DNA of 64,000 bases, taken from the sequence record NC_021531.1, one strand, 5' to 3'. How positions within the stretch are numbered: the stretch's first letter is position 1; every line of letters begins with the position of its first letter. A program made the position numbers and the translations under genes. This document shows, piece after piece, positions 19,873 through 45,474 of this stretch. Under the pieces are notes generated by a model that ran no database searches, was not told where the DNA came from, and worked only from the letters and a program-made list of their open reading frames with translations.

Positions 19873-20694
19873 ATGGACGATATTCAAGACTCGATAGTTA
19901 CCGGGACGCCGCAAGACCCGCCTACTGGTAAGTATCTACAGAAGTGTTTCTGGGAATTGTACGACCAATTAAATCCCGACCCGCGAATGTGGAAGCGATT
20001 GGTACGCGAGTATGTAGAAGACGAACGCTTTATCGGCAAGTCGACTGCTTCACCCGAAGAACGTATCTCTCGACTGACCACCGCCCTGAGTCGTGGTAAC
20101 ATTAAGCATCTGCAACCCGATTTAACGTGGAAGCGTTTTATCGAGGGCTTGGTGTTCCTCAAGATTCAATCTCTACGCGTCACGGCAACTGCCTTTCGTG
20201 GCAACTGGAAAACGAAGAGGACGGTATCCGCTGTCACTCGTCCTGAGACTGACCATCTCCGGGCTGTGAATAAAGAGGATGAAGAAGTGTTTGCTGAATC
20301 AGTCGGCCGAACACTCAACCGTTACTTCGATAACCCAGAGAAAACCGCGACACGGGTTATGGAACACATCTTACTGAAATTATTTTGGCAGGCCATCGCC
20401 CAGTACAAGATTGATAGCCGCATGTGGAAGGAACTGTTAATCGTTTACGTTAACAATCCGAAGAACTGTCCGCAAATCAAATCGCGTCGTAACGATGCCC
20501 GTCATAATCTCCAACAATCTATTCGTCGAACCAAAAAGTTAACATGGCGCTTCTTCCTTAAAGCAATGCAGGCGATTGACGTCCGCGAGCTTCGGATGGC
20601 GTTTCTCTTTACAACCGAGAGCGGTAAAGAGGTGGAGTGTTACTTTGTTGTTGATTTGACGAAGCATACGTTTAAGAGCGGTAAAGATGAGTAA
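19873..20694 (+). CDS. hypothetical protein made of two tandem homologous domains
   Basis: L.K.FW...D.RMWK.L...YV and LTW..F each occur twice. Start moved to ATG 19873. Confidence 0.8.
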   Translation: MDDIQDSIVTGTPQDPPTGKYLQKCFWELYDQLNPDPRMWKRLVREYVEDERFIGKSTASPEERISRLTTALSRGNIKHLQPDLTWKRFIEGLVFLKIQSLRVTATAFRGNWKTKRTVSAVTRPETDHLRAVNKEDEEVFAESVGRTLNRYFDNPEKTATRVMEHILLKLFWQAIAQYKIDSRMWKELLIVYVNNPKNCPQIKSRRNDARHNLQQSIRRTKKLTWRFFLKAMQAIDVRELRMAFLFTTESGKEVECYFVVDLTKHTFKSGKDE

Positions 20695-21937
20695 CCTACT
20701 TGATAGCGCATTGGCAGGCGCAAAAGCAGGCTGGGGTGCCGTATCCGGTAGCGGAACATCGGCAGACCAGCTTACTAAAGCCGTGGGTGGTCTTTATGAC
20801 CAAATCGCAAAGAAAGATGCAGTACAGCAGGCTGCGTCTGTAAGGGGGAGTGGTAGCGGGACAGGCCCGACTACTCGCCCGACTATCTTTGAAACCGACC
20901 CGACCGGGATGCTTCCGGAACTCGACCCGATTCTTCGTAAGGTAGCAGTGCCTTTCGAAGGGCTCGACAAGATGGGCAAACAGGTATTGGATTACCTTGA
21001 CCCGTCGGGTAAGTTAACTAACCTCGCGAAGAAAGCCGCTGACGCTTTACCGGGGGAATTAAAAGAAGCGGGTACTAAACTCGCTCGAGGCGACATCGTC
21101 GACGCCGCAAAAGGAATTACGGGGCTAAACAGCTTCAAGGATGTGAACCAGTTAATCACCACAAAGGATGGGAAGTTCGGTTTGGACTTTGCGTCGGTGA
21201 AAGGTCGCATCGAAAAATCGTTCGGTATTAACGGCGGGTTGAACGGGCTATCACCGCAAATCCAAAACCTCATCGGTAAAGCCTCAACAGAAATGTACGG
21301 CGATGAGATGGGTGGGATATTCAACAGCGTTGTTGGTGCTGTTGTCAATGCGGACTTCGATTCGGTTTCTGGCGTTACTGATGTCATCAACCGTATCACG
21401 GGTCAGTCTAAACTCTGGGATGTGTTCGATTTAGGTGCTGCGTCTGCGCTTATCTACGGGTTGACGGACAAGCTCATTGAGTGGGACACGCCAAGCCTCA
21501 TTGATGGGGTGCTCGATAAAATCACTGATGTTAAAGCGCAGAAGGCCATGCTCGATGAGCTGGCAATTCGTGCCAGTGCATCAGGTTCACTGAAGTCCAC
21601 CGAGTATTACGTGGCGAAACTCAGTGAGGAGCGCAAGAACGCGATTGCGGATTTGGTCATCAGTAACATGATGCGCAGTCTGAGCTTCTGGGCCTCAAGC
21701 GGTGACGAGGTTTCTTACGGTGATTACGGTCGTCGTCTGATAAGTCTGTTTGGCAGCCTGAATCCGAAGTGGGACCGTGACCCCTACGACCCCACTACCC
21801 CGAGCTGCTATTATTTCACCCTCATGAACGAAACTGCTTACAAGTCATTATTGACCACGGATAAGCGTCCGTTCTGCGCCGTCTTCGGCATCGTTACGCG
21901 AGATGATGTGGATACGATCATCTCCGATAGCTTTTAG
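20687..21937 (+). CDS. putative virion structural protein
   Basis: 416 aa with a Gly/Ala/Ser-rich N-terminus. Function is weak inference. Confidence 0.5.
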   Translation: MSNLLDSALAGAKAGWGAVSGSGTSADQLTKAVGGLYDQIAKKDAVQQAASVRGSGSGTGPTTRPTIFETDPTGMLPELDPILRKVAVPFEGLDKMGKQVLDYLDPSGKLTNLAKKAADALPGELKEAGTKLARGDIVDAAKGITGLNSFKDVNQLITTKDGKFGLDFASVKGRIEKSFGINGGLNGLSPQIQNLIGKASTEMYGDEMGGIFNSVVGAVVNADFDSVSGVTDVINRITGQSKLWDVFDLGAASALIYGLTDKLIEWDTPSLIDGVLDKITDVKAQKAMLDELAIRASASGSLKSTEYYVAKLSEERKNAIADLVISNMMRSLSFWASSGDEVSYGDYGRRLISLFGSLNPKWDRDPYDPTTPSCYYFTLMNETAYKSLLTTDKRPFCAVFGIVTRDDVDTIISDSF

Positions 21938-21948
21938 TGGGAGAAGTT

Positions 21949-22965
21949 ATGATTACCATTAACCCGAAAGTAGTACCGTTAACACGTCTGGCAGGGTTGC
22001 TGAGGGTGTTAACGCTGGGTACGCGCTACGACCATTCTTGCCAAGGAGAAGGTAAAGAGAAAGTCATTGCCCGTATCAGACACGACATGTTGTTAGAGCA
22101 GGTGTTTCCATCGAAGTTCGAAGAGGGGATGTCTGAGCTGGCGCTGCTCGAGATTTATAAAACGGGGAAATACGATGCGAAGTACGGCATAGCCATGGCA
22201 CAGCGGAACGGCTTAAACCTGCCGAAAGCGAATGCCCACGACTACGATGTGACCAAATGCAGTTTGAGGTCGCTGAGCGTACATCCCGGACCGCTGCGTC
22301 ATGACCGCGATACCGAACTGTTCGTGCATATGCGTCGTATTGGTGCGGTGTCGATTGTGGGTGAGCAGGAAGATGGTACTGACGGGGTTAACCATGTCAA
22401 TATCTATTCGGATGGGCGCACCATGGTAGGTCGTCTCGCCAGTAATTTTAGCGAAGGTCCATTCGAGACAATAGACGGTACGTTCTTCACGCTTGAAGGC
22501 TACTATCACTGGTTGCGCATTCGTGACTGGACACAGGCTACCAAATACGCTTTTAACATGGCGGCGATGGAAGACATGTATCCGGGCCTACGGAAACTGC
22601 GGACTGTGACCGGTACGGAAGCCATTCGCTTAGGGCGCACACTCAAGTCCAACATCTACGGCGGTACGAAATACCGTACAGGGCCTTTCTCGAAAGAGTC
22701 GTTGGAGCGTTTTCGTTGGGCGTTAGCCGGGAAGTTACACAAGCTGCGTTACAATAATGTGACACTGGGTAACTATTTGTCGATGATGGTGTATTGCGGT
22801 TTTCCGTTAACGCATTACTACGTGTATAACGGTAAAGTGAAATACCCGGACTTCCGCGAGTGGTTGCCTAACTTATTGTCTGGCTTGTTGGAACATATAG
22901 ACCCCAACGATTCGGACTTCGATTTAGCTGCGCTACAAGCGAAAATAACAGAGGGTTCGATATGA
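21949..22965 (+). CDS. NADAR-like (T4 gp30.3/YbiA-like) domain protein with N-terminal extension
   Basis: DGVNHVNIYSDGRTMVGRLASNF, TLEGYYHWL and GTEAIRLGR match the phage NADAR pattern. Start ATG 21949 after GGGAG. Confidence 0.62.
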   Translation: MITINPKVVPLTRLAGLLRVLTLGTRYDHSCQGEGKEKVIARIRHDMLLEQVFPSKFEEGMSELALLEIYKTGKYDAKYGIAMAQRNGLNLPKANAHDYDVTKCSLRSLSVHPGPLRHDRDTELFVHMRRIGAVSIVGEQEDGTDGVNHVNIYSDGRTMVGRLASNFSEGPFETIDGTFFTLEGYYHWLRIRDWTQATKYAFNMAAMEDMYPGLRKLRTVTGTEAIRLGRTLKSNIYGGTKYRTGPFSKESLERFRWALAGKLHKLRYNNVTLGNYLSMMVYCGFPLTHYYVYNGKVKYPDFREWLPNLLSGLLEHIDPNDSDFDLAALQAKITEGSI

Positions 22966-23627
22966 CTTTTAGTCTGACTGCCATGCTCGAAGGGCTGGAC
23001 AAAGACAAGGAGTGGGGTCATCAACAGGCTGCTCAGGAATCTATCTCGGTTGAGAAAGAGAAAGAGTATTGCCTGTGGGTGAAGCCAACGTCTGCAGGGT
23101 GGCAGTGGCTGGGTGAGCAACAGAGTACGCCGACACTGGATATTCTGATGCCTATCGAAGGGGCACGTCGTCGCTGCCGCATTCGTCCGGATGGGGCGAA
23201 GTTAACGTTGAAGCAACGTATCAACAATGAGACGGTGGAAGAGAACAGCGATATCGGTTTCGGTATGGCGTTGTCGTTCTACGCAGATGGGTTTAATGCT
23301 CACCTGTTCCGCCGTATTCATCTGGAAGCCGCTCCGGAATTAATGGAGCAGGGCGCGAAACACTGGGACATCGATATTTTCCATATCGTGCCACAGCATC
23401 CGCAACTGCCGGACATTCAGGCGCTGAACGATTTATCAGACACGCTTCGCCAGACCACCGCTTACGGTGATTTGGTAAAAGTGGAACTGGAGGTGGGGAC
23501 GTTCTTCACTGACAGCATCCGTGACCTACTGCCGTTTGAAGTCGAGGAGATTTATCCTTCTCGTCCGAAAGACGAAGAAACGCAGGTTATGTTGGCTGAT
23601 TACTGGGATAACATTACCAGTATTTGA
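22962..23627 (+). CDS. CYTH / triphosphate tunnel metalloenzyme family protein
   Basis: EKEKE (ExExK-like), RCRIR, LTLK, EEN, FRRI, WDIDIF and KVELE appear in canonical CYTH order. Confidence 0.72.
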   Translation: MTFSLTAMLEGLDKDKEWGHQQAAQESISVEKEKEYCLWVKPTSAGWQWLGEQQSTPTLDILMPIEGARRRCRIRPDGAKLTLKQRINNETVEENSDIGFGMALSFYADGFNAHLFRRIHLEAAPELMEQGAKHWDIDIFHIVPQHPQLPDIQALNDLSDTLRQTTAYGDLVKVELEVGTFFTDSIRDLLPFEVEEIYPSRPKDEETQVMLADYWDNITSI

Positions 23628-23633
23628 TATACA

Positions 23634-23668
23634 CCCAGCCCCGGTGGGCTGGGTTTCTTTCTTTTCTT
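23634..23668 (+). terminator. intrinsic terminator
   Basis: CCCAGCCC-CGGT-GGGCTGGG followed by TTTCTTTCTTTT. Confidence 0.8.
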
Positions 23669-26034: not shown

Positions 26035-28239
26035 TTACAGACGAGATGGGCCACCCATGAAGGCTGCCACCACACGAGCAGGCGGAGTATCCATTACCGA
26101 GTTGACAATGTTACTCACAGAAGCAGCAGACTTCCAACTCATCAGCCACTTGTTCCAGTTCATGTTAAACATCTCAATACCTTTAGTGCGCTGATGCAGA
26201 GAAGCCCCGCCCAGTACAGCCATAAAGTCTGAGAATTTGTTATCGTCATCGAACACACCCGGGTCAGTAACGAGCGGCATATGCATCACACGGGACAAAT
26301 CTTTGATGGTGACACTGATGTCAACACTCAATGGAATCCCGTCTTTACGCCAGCCTAAGTTACCCACACCGAACGTCATGCTCACGTTGGTTACCATTGC
26401 ATTACGGAACGCAAAGCGACCGCGGGAGTAACATTCGAGATAGAACGGGTGGATATACGTTTGCTTACCGGTCGACAGTGGGCACACCGCCGCAATCCAG
26501 AACGCAATAGGCACGATGATTTCTTGGAACACGTCCAAGTCATTACCAGACCACGCGCGAAGTGGAATGTTCAGTGTGAAGTCGTCACCTGAGGTGTCAG
26601 ATGAATCCCACACTTCCGGGAAGTCAACCACCGACTGACTGTACAGTGCAGCCAGCCCCGTTAAGTGGAGCGTATCCAGTGCACCACCCAACGCAGACTT
26701 AACGCCTTCGATAGCACCATCCACAAAGTCCGCACCCGTTTTCCCGCCTGATGTGTTTACATCAAGACTACGGGCAGCAGAGGTCATACTGTTCACCTTG
26801 CCAGAAATCTCCGGCTCTTTGGTGGAGTTTGACCAGCTACGTTGTGTGGTATCACGTCCGTCTATACGCCATGTAACCCACTGTGCGCCGTCTTGTAACT
26901 CAGACAATGCCTGAGTAGAGATTTTAGTGGCGAGCGTCTTCACGGCCTTCTCAGCCCCGTCTACGAACTCACCCATCAAATCCCCGAATGACTTACCGCC
27001 GGTTTCGTCGTTAAACTTCTGAATCTCTTCATCCGTTAACCCACCGGTTGCCAGCTTCTCGACGCCAGACGTCGTCATAGTCGGTTCAGGGGCGGTACCG
27101 TTCTCAACGTTCTGAGCGGTCTGGTCCTGGTTGTAGTTCGAACGCAGCTGGTTAAGGGTAGCCGTCGCCTCCTCTTCCTTCGCGTCCTCAATCCCGATAT
27201 ACCCGGCGTTCTCTTTGTGATACAGCTCGAGGTCAGCCAGAGAGATTTCATACTTCTGTGCCGCTTCACGGACCTGCTGGGTATAACGGGCGTTACGATA
27301 GAAACGCTCAAGCTTCGCCTGCACGTCTTCGATACTGCTACCGTCATTGTAAATCTGCTCCAGCATAGTCGCCTGATAGTTGGCGAGAGTCTGGTAACGG
27401 TTAATCATCTTGTAGACGTCAAACTCACCGTTAGACTTCCAGATGCCCGGCAGCATGTTATACAGGTCTTTGCGGTCACCGTAGTATTTGTTCTCCGGCT
27501 GGTCAATCCCTTTCATCTGCGCTTGCTGACGTTTGTCGTCGTAGATGTTCCACTGGCCGAGTGACTGAATAGGAACCAGTTTACGGTACAGCAGCTGGGT
27601 GTTGATGATGTTCTGCACAGCACGTAGATACAGGTGCATCGTCGGCTTGACGTAGTAATACTTCGACGTCTGTTTGTTCAGCACCATTTTGATGATGCGC
27701 GGGATAATAAGAATCGAAGCAAAGGCCACGGTTCCCACTGCAGCCCAGATTGCGGCTCCCGTTACCCACGATGCCACGGTACGAATGATACGGGTGTAAT
27801 CACCGGTACGGGCCAGATACGCAAGGTTCGAGTCGTACATGTTCGCAAAGAAGGCGACCACGCCCAAGTATTTCGGTTTCCCGTAACGACAGTGGACATA
27901 GAAGGCGTTCTCTTCGATAGACTCTTGGTAGTACGTCCCTAAGGTGTACGAGCCGGCTTCTGCTTGTGCTTGTATCTTCTCCTGTTGGTCCCCGCGGCTG
28001 TAGTTAAGCGGGTTAGCAAAAAGGCCACCTACAGAAGGGTCAGCAAAACGGGTAAACTGCGGTGGCGCATTTAATGCCTGGTTACCACCCATGGTCGTAT
28101 CCGAGGATGAAAAATACGCACTGCTATACAAGCGCAGATTGCGTAGACGGGTATCCCCCATCTGTGGTGCCAACCCGAACACGGAACGCACCCATGATTG
28201 GTCCGATAATCTTTCTGTGGTTGCCATTTTAAACTCCAT
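26035..28239 (-). CDS. virion tail/baseplate-associated protein (phiKZ gp182-like)
   Basis: 734 aa, directly downstream of the giant tail lysozyme gene as in phiKZ gp181-gp182 (synteny). Confidence 0.65.
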   Translation of the reverse strand: MEFKMATTERLSDQSWVRSVFGLAPQMGDTRLRNLRLYSSAYFSSSDTTMGGNQALNAPPQFTRFADPSVGGLFANPLNYSRGDQQEKIQAQAEAGSYTLGTYYQESIEENAFYVHCRYGKPKYLGVVAFFANMYDSNLAYLARTGDYTRIIRTVASWVTGAAIWAAVGTVAFASILIIPRIIKMVLNKQTSKYYYVKPTMHLYLRAVQNIINTQLLYRKLVPIQSLGQWNIYDDKRQQAQMKGIDQPENKYYGDRKDLYNMLPGIWKSNGEFDVYKMINRYQTLANYQATMLEQIYNDGSSIEDVQAKLERFYRNARYTQQVREAAQKYEISLADLELYHKENAGYIGIEDAKEEEATATLNQLRSNYNQDQTAQNVENGTAPEPTMTTSGVEKLATGGLTDEEIQKFNDETGGKSFGDLMGEFVDGAEKAVKTLATKISTQALSELQDGAQWVTWRIDGRDTTQRSWSNSTKEPEISGKVNSMTSAARSLDVNTSGGKTGADFVDGAIEGVKSALGGALDTLHLTGLAALYSQSVVDFPEVWDSSDTSGDDFTLNIPLRAWSGNDLDVFQEIIVPIAFWIAAVCPLSTGKQTYIHPFYLECYSRGRFAFRNAMVTNVSMTFGVGNLGWRKDGIPLSVDISVTIKDLSRVMHMPLVTDPGVFDDDNKFSDFMAVLGGASLHQRTKGIEMFNMNWNKWLMSWKSAASVSNIVNSVMDTPPARVVAAFMGGPSRL

Positions 28240-43310: not shown

Positions 43311-44033
43311 ATGAACGCCATTGAAACAGCAACGCGTGACCCTAAAAAAGTGCATGCGGATTTAGTAGACCAGGACACGATGACCATCACCAAAGGTGGT
43401 TGTTACATTTACGTCCCGGTAGGTTATGCGTCGAAAGAGATGGCGTTCATCTCTTCTGAAGTTCTGATTATGGGGATGTTTGCCATCTCCACTGACCGTA
43501 AAACGTACGGCGTTTCCAACGTAACTACGTTGATTGAAATTACCCCCACCACGTTTGAGCAGGTGGATATATTTGGGGAGCCGTATTACGAGTTTCGATT
43601 TGACCCGGGCACGGTGGTGTTCCCGAACCGGATGCTTCAATGCTTACCCGGTCACGTGTACAACATTGTCTCGTACGTCTATGACTACGGGAATGTGCCT
43701 TTTTGGATGAATGCAGTCGACCACGCCGAATTACTTGCAGATGTGCCGTTGTGGAATACGTTTAAAGTGTTCAACGACCAAATAGACCGCGACGTTTATG
43801 CCGCCCACATCCAACGTAATCCTAAAAACGTCCGTGAGTTTTTCCGCGCCAGTCTGAAAAAGGATAGCGATATTTATAACCCGGTGCAATTCATTCCTCT
43901 ACGTGACGGTTCTTTGAACAAAACGTCTCGGCTGGCGAAACTGTCCGACACGGAACTGCGCCGTGGTATCCGGTCAGCCTTAACCAACGACCCGGTTCGT
44001 GCCGAGCCGCTCGAAGACATCTTTATGCGATAA
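43311..44033 (+). CDS. conserved virion protein, possibly vRNAP-associated (phiKZ gp176-like)
   Basis: 240 aa, directly upstream of the protease. Assignment from remembered synteny only. Confidence 0.45.
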   Translation: MNAIETATRDPKKVHADLVDQDTMTITKGGCYIYVPVGYASKEMAFISSEVLIMGMFAISTDRKTYGVSNVTTLIEITPTTFEQVDIFGEPYYEFRFDPGTVVFPNRMLQCLPGHVYNIVSYVYDYGNVPFWMNAVDHAELLADVPLWNTFKVFNDQIDRDVYAAHIQRNPKNVREFFRASLKKDSDIYNPVQFIPLRDGSLNKTSRLAKLSDTELRRGIRSALTNDPVRAEPLEDIFMR

Positions 44034-44049
44034 TATCTGGAGGATTGCA

Positions 44050-44856
44050 ATGGAAAATATGTCGTTGCGCTATAACTGCGTAGCGCTCGCGGGGGTGAAC
44101 AACCCGCAAGGTTTACAACAGGACGACAGCGGTTACTACCGTGTCCTGTTGGGTGCACTGAACGTGTTCAACTCTGAGAACATCTTCTACACCTACAACG
44201 AATCGAAGCATGTGTTCGAACGTTCGAACATCTTCATGCGTAAGATTGCCGCCGGTAACCTGTACGGTGAATGCGACCACCCTGAATGGGGTCCGGGCAT
44301 GACCGAAGCGGAATTCATGGACCGTAACGAGTGGATTGAAATCACCAACACAGCGTTCCATATCCGCGAAGTCGAGCCTATCGTTACCAACGAAATGTGT
44401 AACGGTCAGCCTGTCGTTGAAATCTGGGGATGGATTAAACCGGAAGACAACGATCTGGGTCGTCGCCTGAAAGCCGGTTTGGATAACCCGCATCAGAACG
44501 TGTGCTTCTCTCTGCGTGCCATCGTGCGTCAAGGTGTCATCGGTGGTGTGCGTACCCGTCGTATCGATAAGCTGGTTACCTTTGACTGGGTTATTGAAGA
44601 CGGCCTGCGTATCTGTAACAAATACTCCAGCATGGTTCGTGGCTCCACGGTAGCTCAGGAATCAACGCGTACCTTTATCGACCGTCCGGTCAGTCGTGAA
44701 GCCTGCCAGCAGATTCTGGCAACCGGCGCACGTCACCTGAAGGTTGCTACCGAGTCTCGCCGCCGTAACGTGGTTGACTCTGCGCGTGAATACCTGTCTA
44801 CCATCGACAGCCGTCCTCAGGTGAAACATGTTGGTTTGGGAGCGAGGGTTTGGTAA
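44050..44856 (+). CDS. prohead maturation protease (phiKZ gp175-like)
   Basis: LYGECDHP (catalytic His), NVCFSLRA (catalytic Ser) and LVTFDWV. Start moved to ATG 44050. Confidence 0.88.
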   Translation: MENMSLRYNCVALAGVNNPQGLQQDDSGYYRVLLGALNVFNSENIFYTYNESKHVFERSNIFMRKIAAGNLYGECDHPEWGPGMTEAEFMDRNEWIEITNTAFHIREVEPIVTNEMCNGQPVVEIWGWIKPEDNDLGRRLKAGLDNPHQNVCFSLRAIVRQGVIGGVRTRRIDKLVTFDWVIEDGLRICNKYSSMVRGSTVAQESTRTFIDRPVSREACQQILATGARHLKVATESRRRNVVDSAREYLSTIDSRPQVKHVGLGARVW

Positions 44857-45474
44857 ATGGCGATTTCGCTGGCGACGTTAGAAACATGGCGTAACGGCCA
44901 GAATCCCAAACTATTCTCGCGTTTGCGGCCTCGTGGGATTGAGACCGCACCTTTGCACATCAGTGCAAGTCCTGTTCGTAAGTTTATTCCCCGTATTCCG
45001 TTGTCCTGCGCACCGGGCGAAGACCAAACGGTCGCTCGTGTCTGTTGCGCACTTTCGTTGGAGAACTGTTTTAAGGGTGCAGCCTGGAACTTTAAAGAGA
45101 CCCCTCCGAAAAGGTTCCACGTGTACGGCTTTAATGAGAACGCGGTGATTGACCCCACCCCGACTCTCACACAAGAGCCGTCTCGGAACGGTGAGGTTTG
45201 GATTGTGCCTCATCGTTTATCGAACTGGGATTTAACACCAGAGTCCGTAGGGCAAATGCGTTTGCACTCCCACACGGAAAATTTGACTCGCTTTACTTAC
45301 ATCTTGCAGACCTACACGGACGTTATCCTCAATGATGAACAGACCCTCGGCAAAGGATGGTGGCGTATCGGTGTCCATTTCAATGGCAATAACGGTATAA
45401 CCCTATCTTACGACGGGGAATCAAACAGTAATGAATTTGGTAACGCGGCAAATGTTTATTCGGTCATTAGCTAG
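44857..45474 (+). CDS. hypothetical protein with possible ADP-ribosyltransferase-like fold
   Basis: PLHISAS...KFIPRIP...EDQTVARVCCALSL...NGEVWIV. The CDS is solid but the fold is inference. Confidence 0.4.
   Translation: MAISLATLETWRNGQNPKLFSRLRPRGIETAPLHISASPVRKFIPRIPLSCAPGEDQTVARVCCALSLENCFKGAAWNFKETPPKRFHVYGFNENAVIDPTPTLTQEPSRNGEVWIVPHRLSNWDLTPESVGQMRLHSHTENLTRFTYILQTYTDVILNDEQTLGKGWWRIGVHFNGNNGITLSYDGESNSNEFGNAANVYSVIS

Follow-up and report, generated by a model that had tools for sequence, protein, structure and literature searches.

In T4-like phages, the internal head proteins and the Alt ADP-ribosyltransferase carry a short N-terminal leader that is removed by the prohead protease, are present at low copy in the head, and are delivered together with the DNA. 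Among viruses of eukaryotes, poxviruses package their own capping enzyme. Giant phages of the phiKZ/SPN3US type pack dozens of head proteins without assigned function, and the role of these proteins on arrival is a standing question. In SPN3US, one of them is gp225, a low-abundance head protein listed as "function unknown" (PMC10052503). Here we describe the gp225 orthologue of Cronobacter phage CR5, CR5_200, whose gene lies in a stretch of 64,000 nucleotides (hereafter the window) that matched the last 64 kb of the CR5 genome (NC_021531/JX094500, 223,989 bp) at 100%. Our analysis suggested that CR5_200 is probably a capsid-packaged and protease-matured head protein with the fold of the triphosphate tunnel metalloenzymes (TTM, or CYTH, proteins), which is predicted to hydrolyse triphosphates.

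CR5 is a Derbicusvirus of the Chimalliviridae, the nucleus-forming jumbo phages. All positions below are those of the window, which are obtained by subtracting 159,989 from the CR5 record position. CR5_200 (YP_008125940.1) is made as a 221-aa precursor from 22962..23627 on the + strand, stop codon included, as indicated by the list of open reading frames (ORFs), the record annotation, PHROG 7768 and the orthology with SPN3US gp225; the record labels it a hypothetical protein. Its ATG shares bases with the TGA of the upstream ORF in an ATGA at 22962-22965, and the translation contains A24-Q25-E26-S27 (nt 23031-23042), S29-V30-E31, and E-K-E-K-E at aa 31-35. An earlier account of this DNA, made without database searches (the sequence-only reading), had reported the ORF bounds, the ATGA coupling and these three peptides, all of which were correct. 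When compared with gp225 (SPN3US_0225) by BLASTP, CR5_200 showed 49% identity over the full length (E 2e-72), with conserved gene order. The two proteins also resemble each other in length class, in an aligned protease site and in mature mass (22.3 kDa for gp225 vs 22.4 kDa), while the leader of the CR5 protein is two residues longer and has Q at P2 and A at P4.

The processing of gp225 has been determined experimentally. Scheuch et al. 2023 identified it as a new substrate of the SPN3US prohead protease gp245, one of only nine (PMC10052503). The predicted mass of 25.1 kDa is reduced to 22.3 kDa in the mature protein by removal of a 24-residue N-terminal propeptide, cut at A-R-E24, and the cleavage peptides were present in all replicates of both virions and purified heads, with similar spectral counts for gp225 in the two preparations (about 114 peptide-spectrum matches in virions and 88 in heads; PMC10052503 and its supplement). 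According to the same work, the motif preferred by gp245 is A-x-E, with S at P1' and with V, more rarely A, at P4; counterparts of all nine cleaved proteins were stated to exist in CR5 (PMC10052503). In the BLASTP alignment, which is free of gaps in the site region, gp225 A22-R23-E24/S25 lies over CR5_200 A24-Q25-E26/S27 (the slash marks the cut). CR5_200 would thus begin with a predicted propeptide of 26 aa and 3.0 kDa (aa 1-26; 22962..23039, + strand), which has low model confidence and aligns to the 24-aa propeptide of gp225. The predicted prohead-protease site is A23-A24-Q25-E26/S27 (P4 to P1'; 23028..23042, + strand), based on the alignment to the gp225 site and on the column counts in 41 homologues, where P4 was V in 35 and A in 5, P3 was A in 38, P1 was E in all 41, and P1' was S in 40, a pattern that agrees with the preference published for gp245. 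These results suggested that the leader of CR5_200 is almost certainly removed by the phage's own head protease during capsid packing, as judged from the aligned sequences. Capsid packaging and maturation at A-Q-E/S, with S27 as the new N-terminus, had been proposed in the sequence-only reading and are now strongly supported via gp225, a head protein shown by mass spectrometry to be cut at the aligned A-R-E24; S27 is exactly the position aligned to the measured site. S-V-E (aa 29-31), the second motif named there, was rejected as a further cleavage site because only the A-x-E site has been mapped in SPN3US and because a cut after E31, which lies inside the first strand of the barrel, would remove the start of that strand. 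An A-P-E tripeptide is also found within CR5_200, at aa 124-126.

The CR5 prohead (head maturation) protease, the gp245 orthologue, is encoded at 44050..44856 on the + strand (ORF 43999..44856), and was recognised by phrog_3014 (E 4e-100) and by 63% identity to gp245 (E 1e-127). The self-cleavage of gp245 has been mapped at A-Q-E203 (PMC10052503, Table 2). A gap-free alignment to this site placed a predicted self-cleavage site of the CR5 protease at A202-Q203-E204/S205 (44653..44664, + strand), which is preceded by V, and a cut there would free a C-terminal propeptide of 64 aa, the same length as in gp245. The claim that the tail of the prohead protease contains the same A-Q-E-S string as the CR5_200 leader was confirmed, at 44653-44664, with the string aligned to the self-cleavage site of gp245. 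When all six frames of the whole window were scanned for A-Q-E-S in ORFs of 80 aa or more, just two copies were found, one in CR5_200 and one in the protease tail, vs about 0.2 expected. Of the broader pattern [V/A]-A-x-E-S, the long ORFs (about 20,000 aa in total) contained three copies against an expected 0.87; one is in CR5_200 and two are in the protease tail.

Two further observations concern these proteases and their substrates. The predicted 64-aa propeptide of the CR5 protease contains a second motif, V-A-T-E-S (44740-44760; residues ~231-235 when numbered from the Met at 44050). SPN3US gp245 has kept this motif, and it may mark an additional cut in the tail that is released. In PMC10052503, the Results and Table 2 give propeptides of 24 residues for gp225 and 20 for gp45, and the Discussion swaps the two numbers; our translation of SPN3US_0225 has Glu at residue 24, in agreement with the Results and Table 2.

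The fold of CR5_200 was then predicted by AlphaFold2 from a 41-sequence alignment. The model had a mean predicted local distance difference test score (pLDDT) of 88 and a predicted template modelling score (pTM) of 0.80. From aa 28 on, the model shows a confidently predicted domain with nine strands and some helices, with pLDDT of 85-98 in each ten-residue block from aa 31, and aa 1-26 were modelled as a low-confidence helix (pLDDT 55-58 over aa 1-30). The mature protein (aa 27-221; 23040..23624, + strand) would therefore comprise 195 aa with a mass of 22.4 kDa, an isoelectric point of 4.7 and a single TTM/CYTH-like beta-barrel domain, as judged from the model, the Foldseek matches and the conservation described below. 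When the model was compared with the PDB by Foldseek, ranks 1-24 were taken exclusively by TTM/CYTH enzymes or by the TTM domain of a viral capping enzyme, with probabilities of 0.97-1.0 (1.0 for the top matches, which are TTM/CYTH proteins); more than 20 solved TTM structures were matched, and no structure of another fold scored above about 0.9. The best match was NeuTTM (E 2.7e-5), and E values of 1e-3 or below were obtained for eight chains, which represent two proteins, NeuTTM and GBAA_1210. The matches further included AtTTM3, YgiF, PF0863, SaTTM, BH2851 and the triphosphatase domain of vaccinia D1 (E 4e-3).

A similar result was obtained in the BFVD database of predicted viral structures. 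The best match there was a protein of the Ralstonia jumbo phage RP12 (E 6e-9, TM 0.63/0.65), which carries the UniProt name "CYTH domain-containing protein" (A0A1L7N0R6). Below it ranked proteins of greater length from phages RSF1 and RSL2, together with a number of further CYTH proteins from phages, and the capping enzymes of African swine fever virus and Pithovirus were also among the matches. The fold matches in this database included fused forms of 307-857 aa. The TTM/CYTH fold claimed in the sequence-only reading is therefore supported by AlphaFold2 and Foldseek, since the top PDB matches were all TTM/CYTH proteins and the top viral match is named CYTH; where a tunnel of eight strands had been expected, the modelled domain has nine strands, and at high probability it matched only TTM/CYTH proteins.

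Conservation of charged residues is consistent with this assignment. In 20 relatives of 18-50% identity, E33, E35, R71, R73, K84, E93, W135, K173 and E175 were invariant, and Y36, T82, N95, R118, D138 and E177 were conserved in at least 90%. The resulting fingerprint of invariant or nearly invariant residues (E33/E35, R71/R73, T82/K84, E93/N95, R118, D136/D138, and K173/E175/E177) consists of i/i+2 pairs on successive predicted strands, in which the first and last strands of the barrel carry acidic pairs and the strands between them carry basic residues. Such i/i+2 pairing is a hallmark of tunnel-lining residues, and the alternation suggests that in the model these side chains would face the tunnel. 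The conservation pattern would thus fit an active tunnel.

CR5_200 can also be compared directly with the characterised members of the fold. NeuTTM (NE1496; 2fbl, 3typ), GBAA_1210 (3sy3), AtTTM3 (5a67), E. coli YgiF (5a60) and Sulfolobus SaTTM (7nsf) have the tunnel fold in common with the CR5_200 model. CYTH/TTM enzymes and CR5_200 share the Glu pairs on the first and last strands with Arg/Lys between them, in a single domain of ~150-200 aa. In contrast to these enzymes, with which its identity is only 9-16%, CR5_200 has an extra C-terminal strand and helix, a removable leader and a predicted residence in the virus capsid, and an invariant Lys precedes its last E-x-E.

The family of CR5_200 is small and confined to phages, with 43 clusters in a set of 5.8 billion proteins. 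A profile search of 1.84 billion representatives found 27 relatives at E <= 1e-3, none with a known domain, and the wider profile search of the 5.8-billion set added no CYTH-annotated protein. The named members belong to jumbo phages of Erwinia, Salmonella, Escherichia, Proteus and Cronobacter and to the Vibrio phages pVa-21 and pVp-JHP1101. A profile built from diverse members detected RP12 ORF82, the best structural match in BFVD (local hmmsearch E 3e-17; hhalign 98.5% probability, E 3e-15), so that this match is also a true distant relative in sequence. ORF78 of phage RP31 is 100% identical to RP12 ORF82 over aa 11-214 and was likewise related to the family by profile comparison. It was listed among the virion proteins of phiRP31 on the basis of liquid chromatography coupled to tandem mass spectrometry, with six peptides, an observed mass of 23 kDa and a theoretical mass of 22.9 kDa (PMC5468394, Table S3). 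RP31 ORF78 contains V-A-x-E with the Glu at residue 26, a few residues before the first barrel strand. The two Ralstonia phage proteins thus resemble CR5_200 in the conserved-residue fingerprint, in the V-A-x-E before the first strand and, for RP31, in detection in virions; they differ from it in having about 19% identity, another genomic neighbourhood and a mass near the unprocessed theoretical value.

Some variants in the family deserve a separate description. A metagenomic contig encodes a 400-aa fusion protein (P0057; L009:6001-7203), in which an N-terminal domain of ~175 aa matching phrog_10766 and phrog_5043 is followed by V-A-Q-E/A and then by a full TTM domain. phrog_5043 is the family of the SPN3US head protein gp246 and of the CR5 protein at 44857-45474 in the window, and a single precursor may here be cut by the protease into two head proteins. 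Beside the TTM gene of RP12, ORF81 (L011:40051-40695, 215 aa) encodes a protein of similar length with a very weak match to the family profile (E 0.18 within the genome); it could be a diverged paralogue or a chance match. In two proteins of the Salmonella phages SPFM9 and SPFM1 (P0062 and P0043), the family profile matched in nine separate stretches in scrambled order, and these look like artefacts of assembly or annotation rather than real variants.

Several findings weigh against the view that CR5_200 is a packaged and processed triphosphatase. The template modelling (TM) scores to solved TTM structures were moderate, at 0.4-0.6 (target-normalised about 0.45-0.6 for the single-domain enzymes). 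No Pfam match at E <= 1 and no NCBIfam match was obtained for CR5_200, for the 41-member alignment or for the 20 diverse relatives, and searches of PDB sequences by phmmer and hmmsearch with CR5_200 and the alignment profile returned no CYTH protein. The canonical Lys of ExExK is replaced, with the motif here being E-x-E-[K/R/V]-E-Y. Some proteins with the TTM fold bind ligands without turning them over, and for this phage family the literature searched yielded no record of activity in any member. Packaging and cleavage in CR5 itself rest on homology. The gel mass of RP31 ORF78, 23 kDa, equals the unprocessed 22.9 kDa and gave no sign of processing, so processing may not be universal in the family. 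Finally, the gp225 family is absent from phiKZ and 201phi2-1 (PMC10052503), and is therefore not a core part of the ejected machinery.

The sequence-level points deserve closer consideration. CYTH proteins in the strict sense are those of Pfam PF01928 with an N-terminal ExExK signature, which is attributed to Iyer and Aravind 2002. In the first strand of CR5_200, E31-K-E33-K-E35-Y-C37, the residue two positions past the second Glu (E35 or C37) is in no case a conserved Lys. The RP12 relative likewise had no Pfam or NCBIfam match, and the sole family-level sequence match of CR5_200 was PHROG 7768 (E 3e-108), whose function is not annotated. A match to a 5'-nucleotidase at E 0.63 was regarded as noise. 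Since the ExExK Lys is missing and no CYTH model detects any member, the family is a divergent one of the TTM fold and not a member of Pfam CYTH. The "full set of CYTH motifs" announced in the sequence-only reading stands as far as the conserved charged fingerprint and the fold match are concerned, but not for the ExExK Lys or for any CYTH sequence model. Taken together, the model and its structural matches supported CR5_200 and its relatives as a divergent branch of the TTM fold, which most likely works like a CYTH enzyme.

The following course of events is proposed. CR5_200 would be made as the 221-aa precursor from a late structural-gene cluster, and its 26-residue leader would serve to target it to the capsid, much as short leaders do for other internal head proteins. 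During head maturation, the prohead protease (44050-44856) would cut the leader at A-A-Q-E26/S27 and leave the 195-aa acidic protein inside the capsid at low copy number. This proposal follows the same leader and protease logic as the packaged head enzymes of T4-like phages, with which it shares neither fold, chemistry nor protease specificity. The protein may then enter the cell with the DNA and the packaged RNA polymerase; exit from the capsid with the DNA is expected by the SPN3US authors for many internal head proteins (PMC10052503). In the mature protein, a metal would be held by the Glu pairs of the first and last strands and the triphosphate by Arg/Lys, and the terminal phosphoanhydride bond would be hydrolysed. 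Binding of a divalent metal and a triphosphate, followed by hydrolysis, is predicted because the acidic and basic residues of the TTM barrel form a set that is complete and strictly conserved.

The candidate substrates are inorganic triphosphate or polyphosphate, nucleoside triphosphates (NTPs), and the 5'-triphosphate end of RNA. The strongest fold matches were inorganic triphosphatases, and characterised CYTH enzymes mostly prefer tripolyphosphate. The RNA 5' end, attractive given the virion RNA polymerase in the capsid, is the less supported candidate. Nothing in the analysis pointed specifically to alarmones or immune signalling nucleotides.

A more specific possibility is that the packaged TTM protein is an RNA 5'-triphosphatase, which would act on either the first transcripts of the phage or the ends of host RNA, next to the virion RNA polymerase that is packaged with it. 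The TTM domains of capping enzymes were indeed among the fold matches (vaccinia D1 at E 4e-3, African swine fever virus and Pithovirus), gp225 shares the SPN3US head with the virion RNA polymerase subunits gp240 and gp241, and the gene lies a few genes from those for virion RNA polymerase subunits in both CR5 and SPN3US. The packaged capping enzymes of poxviruses and giant viruses (fold matches 4ckc, P0C994 and A0A481YMX3) likewise place a TTM fold in a virion with its RNA polymerase. However, CYTH proteins of the inorganic-triphosphatase type outranked the capping enzymes, whose matches were weaker (E 4e-3 or worse) and whose TTM domains belong to large multi-domain enzymes. No guanylyltransferase or methyltransferase partner is known in these phages, and no capping partner in CR5, although no search aimed at one was made. 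Moreover, phiKZ and 201phi2-1 have the same virion polymerase without the TTM protein (PMC10052503). We therefore regard this specific activity as unlikely on present evidence. The wider proposition, that nucleus-forming jumbo phages with an injected virion RNA polymerase also inject a TTM triphosphatase that acts on RNA 5'-triphosphate ends in the first minutes of infection, appears somewhat less probable. If true, it would provide a bacterial-virus counterpart of the packaged capping triphosphatase of poxviruses and giant viruses, and would imply 5'-end processing of early phage or host transcripts.

CR5_200 could also be a TTM barrel without turnover, that is, a structural or ligand-binding internal head protein, for example one that holds polyanions such as polyphosphate or DNA ends in the capsid. 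The protein is a head component without demonstrated activity, the canonical Lys of ExExK is missing, and the family is recognised by no CYTH sequence model, all of which are consistent with such a role. Against it, nine positions with charged or aromatic residues, spread so that each strand has one or two, do not vary at 18-50% identity, a pattern typically seen where an active site is maintained. A bulk structural role is also made less likely by the low copy number, and K173, which is invariant and lies on the last strand of the barrel, could stand in for the missing Lys. For these reasons, loss of turnover seems an unlikely explanation as well.

The sequence-only reading had further suggested that CR5_200 forms a NADAR-CYTH pair with the gene before it, and this can be judged from the neighbourhood. 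CR5_200 is the last in a run of tightly packed genes. The first, CR5_198 (20687..21937, + strand; PHROG 5028), is by synteny the positional orthologue of SPN3US gp223, which is listed as "Tail" (PMC10052503 supplement table). The second, CR5_199 (21949..22965, + strand), is the orthologue of SPN3US gp224, and its AlphaFold2 model (pLDDT 85) was weakly NADAR/YbiA-like in Foldseek. The only notable matches in the PDB were YbiA 2b3w (probability 1.0, E 0.11, TM 0.55 target-normalised) and the Phytophthora NADAR protein 8bau (E 0.47), neither of them significant, and no Pfam match was found for CR5_199 at E <= 1. A NADAR-like nature of CR5_199 is thus plausible from this weak match to its model. 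Downstream of CR5_200, an intrinsic-terminator-like hairpin (23633-23654, + strand), with a 9-bp GC-rich stem containing 7 G-C pairs and followed by a T-rich run, begins six bases past the stop codon, so that CR5_200 closes its transcription unit; this bears out the earlier statement that the gene closes the operon. Scans for sigma-70 promoters were uninformative in this region, because these phages use their own polymerases.

In the full version of the sequence-only reading, CR5_199 and CR5_200 could be a counter-defence module of two genes, which would clear alarmones or immune signals derived from nucleotides as infection begins. The genes overlap, by the ATGA in CR5 and by 14 nt in SPN3US (gp224 and gp225), NADAR proteins are the only notable structural neighbours of CR5_199, and NADAR and CYTH domains have been discussed as possible players in the nucleotide-centred conflict of jumbo phages (PMC7824862). 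But gp224 is not listed among the SPN3US virion proteins in the tables of PMC10052503 and gp225 is, so the pair is not co-delivered. In two distant relatives with the same gene order (L005 and L007), the TTM gene is preceded by an ORF of 151 aa or 112 aa, and neither ORF resembles the CR5_199 family. The NADAR match does not reach significance, neither CR5_199 nor CR5_200 had a match in PADLOC, and the cluster includes a tail protein gene, so that adjacency may reflect only late co-expression. The pair is co-transcribed in the CR5/SPN3US group but is neither co-packaged nor ancient, which weakens the module, and we consider it improbable.

As for CR5_199 itself, the mechanically called ORF starts at a GTG at 21937, which overlaps the end of the upstream stop codon by one base, and the record annotates an ATG at 21949. 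Its first ~130 residues are variable or absent in homologues of 263-290 aa, and the conserved NADAR-like core begins near residue 130. Further downstream on the opposite strand (26035-28239, - strand, and beyond), large virion genes are found, CR5_206 and CR5_207 (the latter annotated as tail fiber), followed by a gene for a beta subunit of the virion RNA polymerase. The surroundings of the TTM gene are therefore those of a late structural region.

Last, that the A-x-E match is a coincidence and CR5_200 an unprocessed cytoplasmic enzyme, for example in the clean-up of NTP pools, would agree with the role in degrading unwanted NTPs that has been proposed for the MazG-like and CYTH triphosphatases of jumbo phages (PMC7824862) and with the finding of no CR5 virion proteome in the literature searched, but it is highly improbable given that the orthologue gp225 is experimentally a cleaved head protein, that a distant relative is present in RP31 virions, that the site is kept in 38-41 of 41 homologues, and that the gene lies among late structural genes.

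Returning to the packaged, protease-matured TTM protein, parts of this picture were known before. The packaging and cleavage of gp225 were reported with CR5 named among the phages that have counterparts (PMC10052503), CYTH triphosphatases of jumbo phages had been described in general terms (PMC7824862), and UniProt carries a CYTH tag on the RP12 relative. In the searchable literature, which did not extend to the supplementary tables of PMC7824862, no paper linking gp225 or its relatives to CYTH/TTM was found, and the gp225 family is not mentioned in the Goslar structure paper. The apparently new element is that gp225, a head protein cut by the prohead protease, makes up a TTM-fold family together with its relatives, and that this family occurs in virions from two or more distant lineages of jumbo phages.

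This is by itself no new kind of system, since head enzymes that are packaged and trimmed by a protease were known before, and so were CYTH proteins of phages. The CR5_200 family represents a sequence-orphan branch of the TTM fold that is missed by current Pfam and NCBIfam models. The TTM assignment provides the first concrete biochemical hypothesis for gp225, and a likely enzymatic role for a head protein so far listed without function. The presence of relatives in the virions of distant Salmonella and Ralstonia jumbo phages points to a recurrent, deliberately delivered activity rather than to a passenger.

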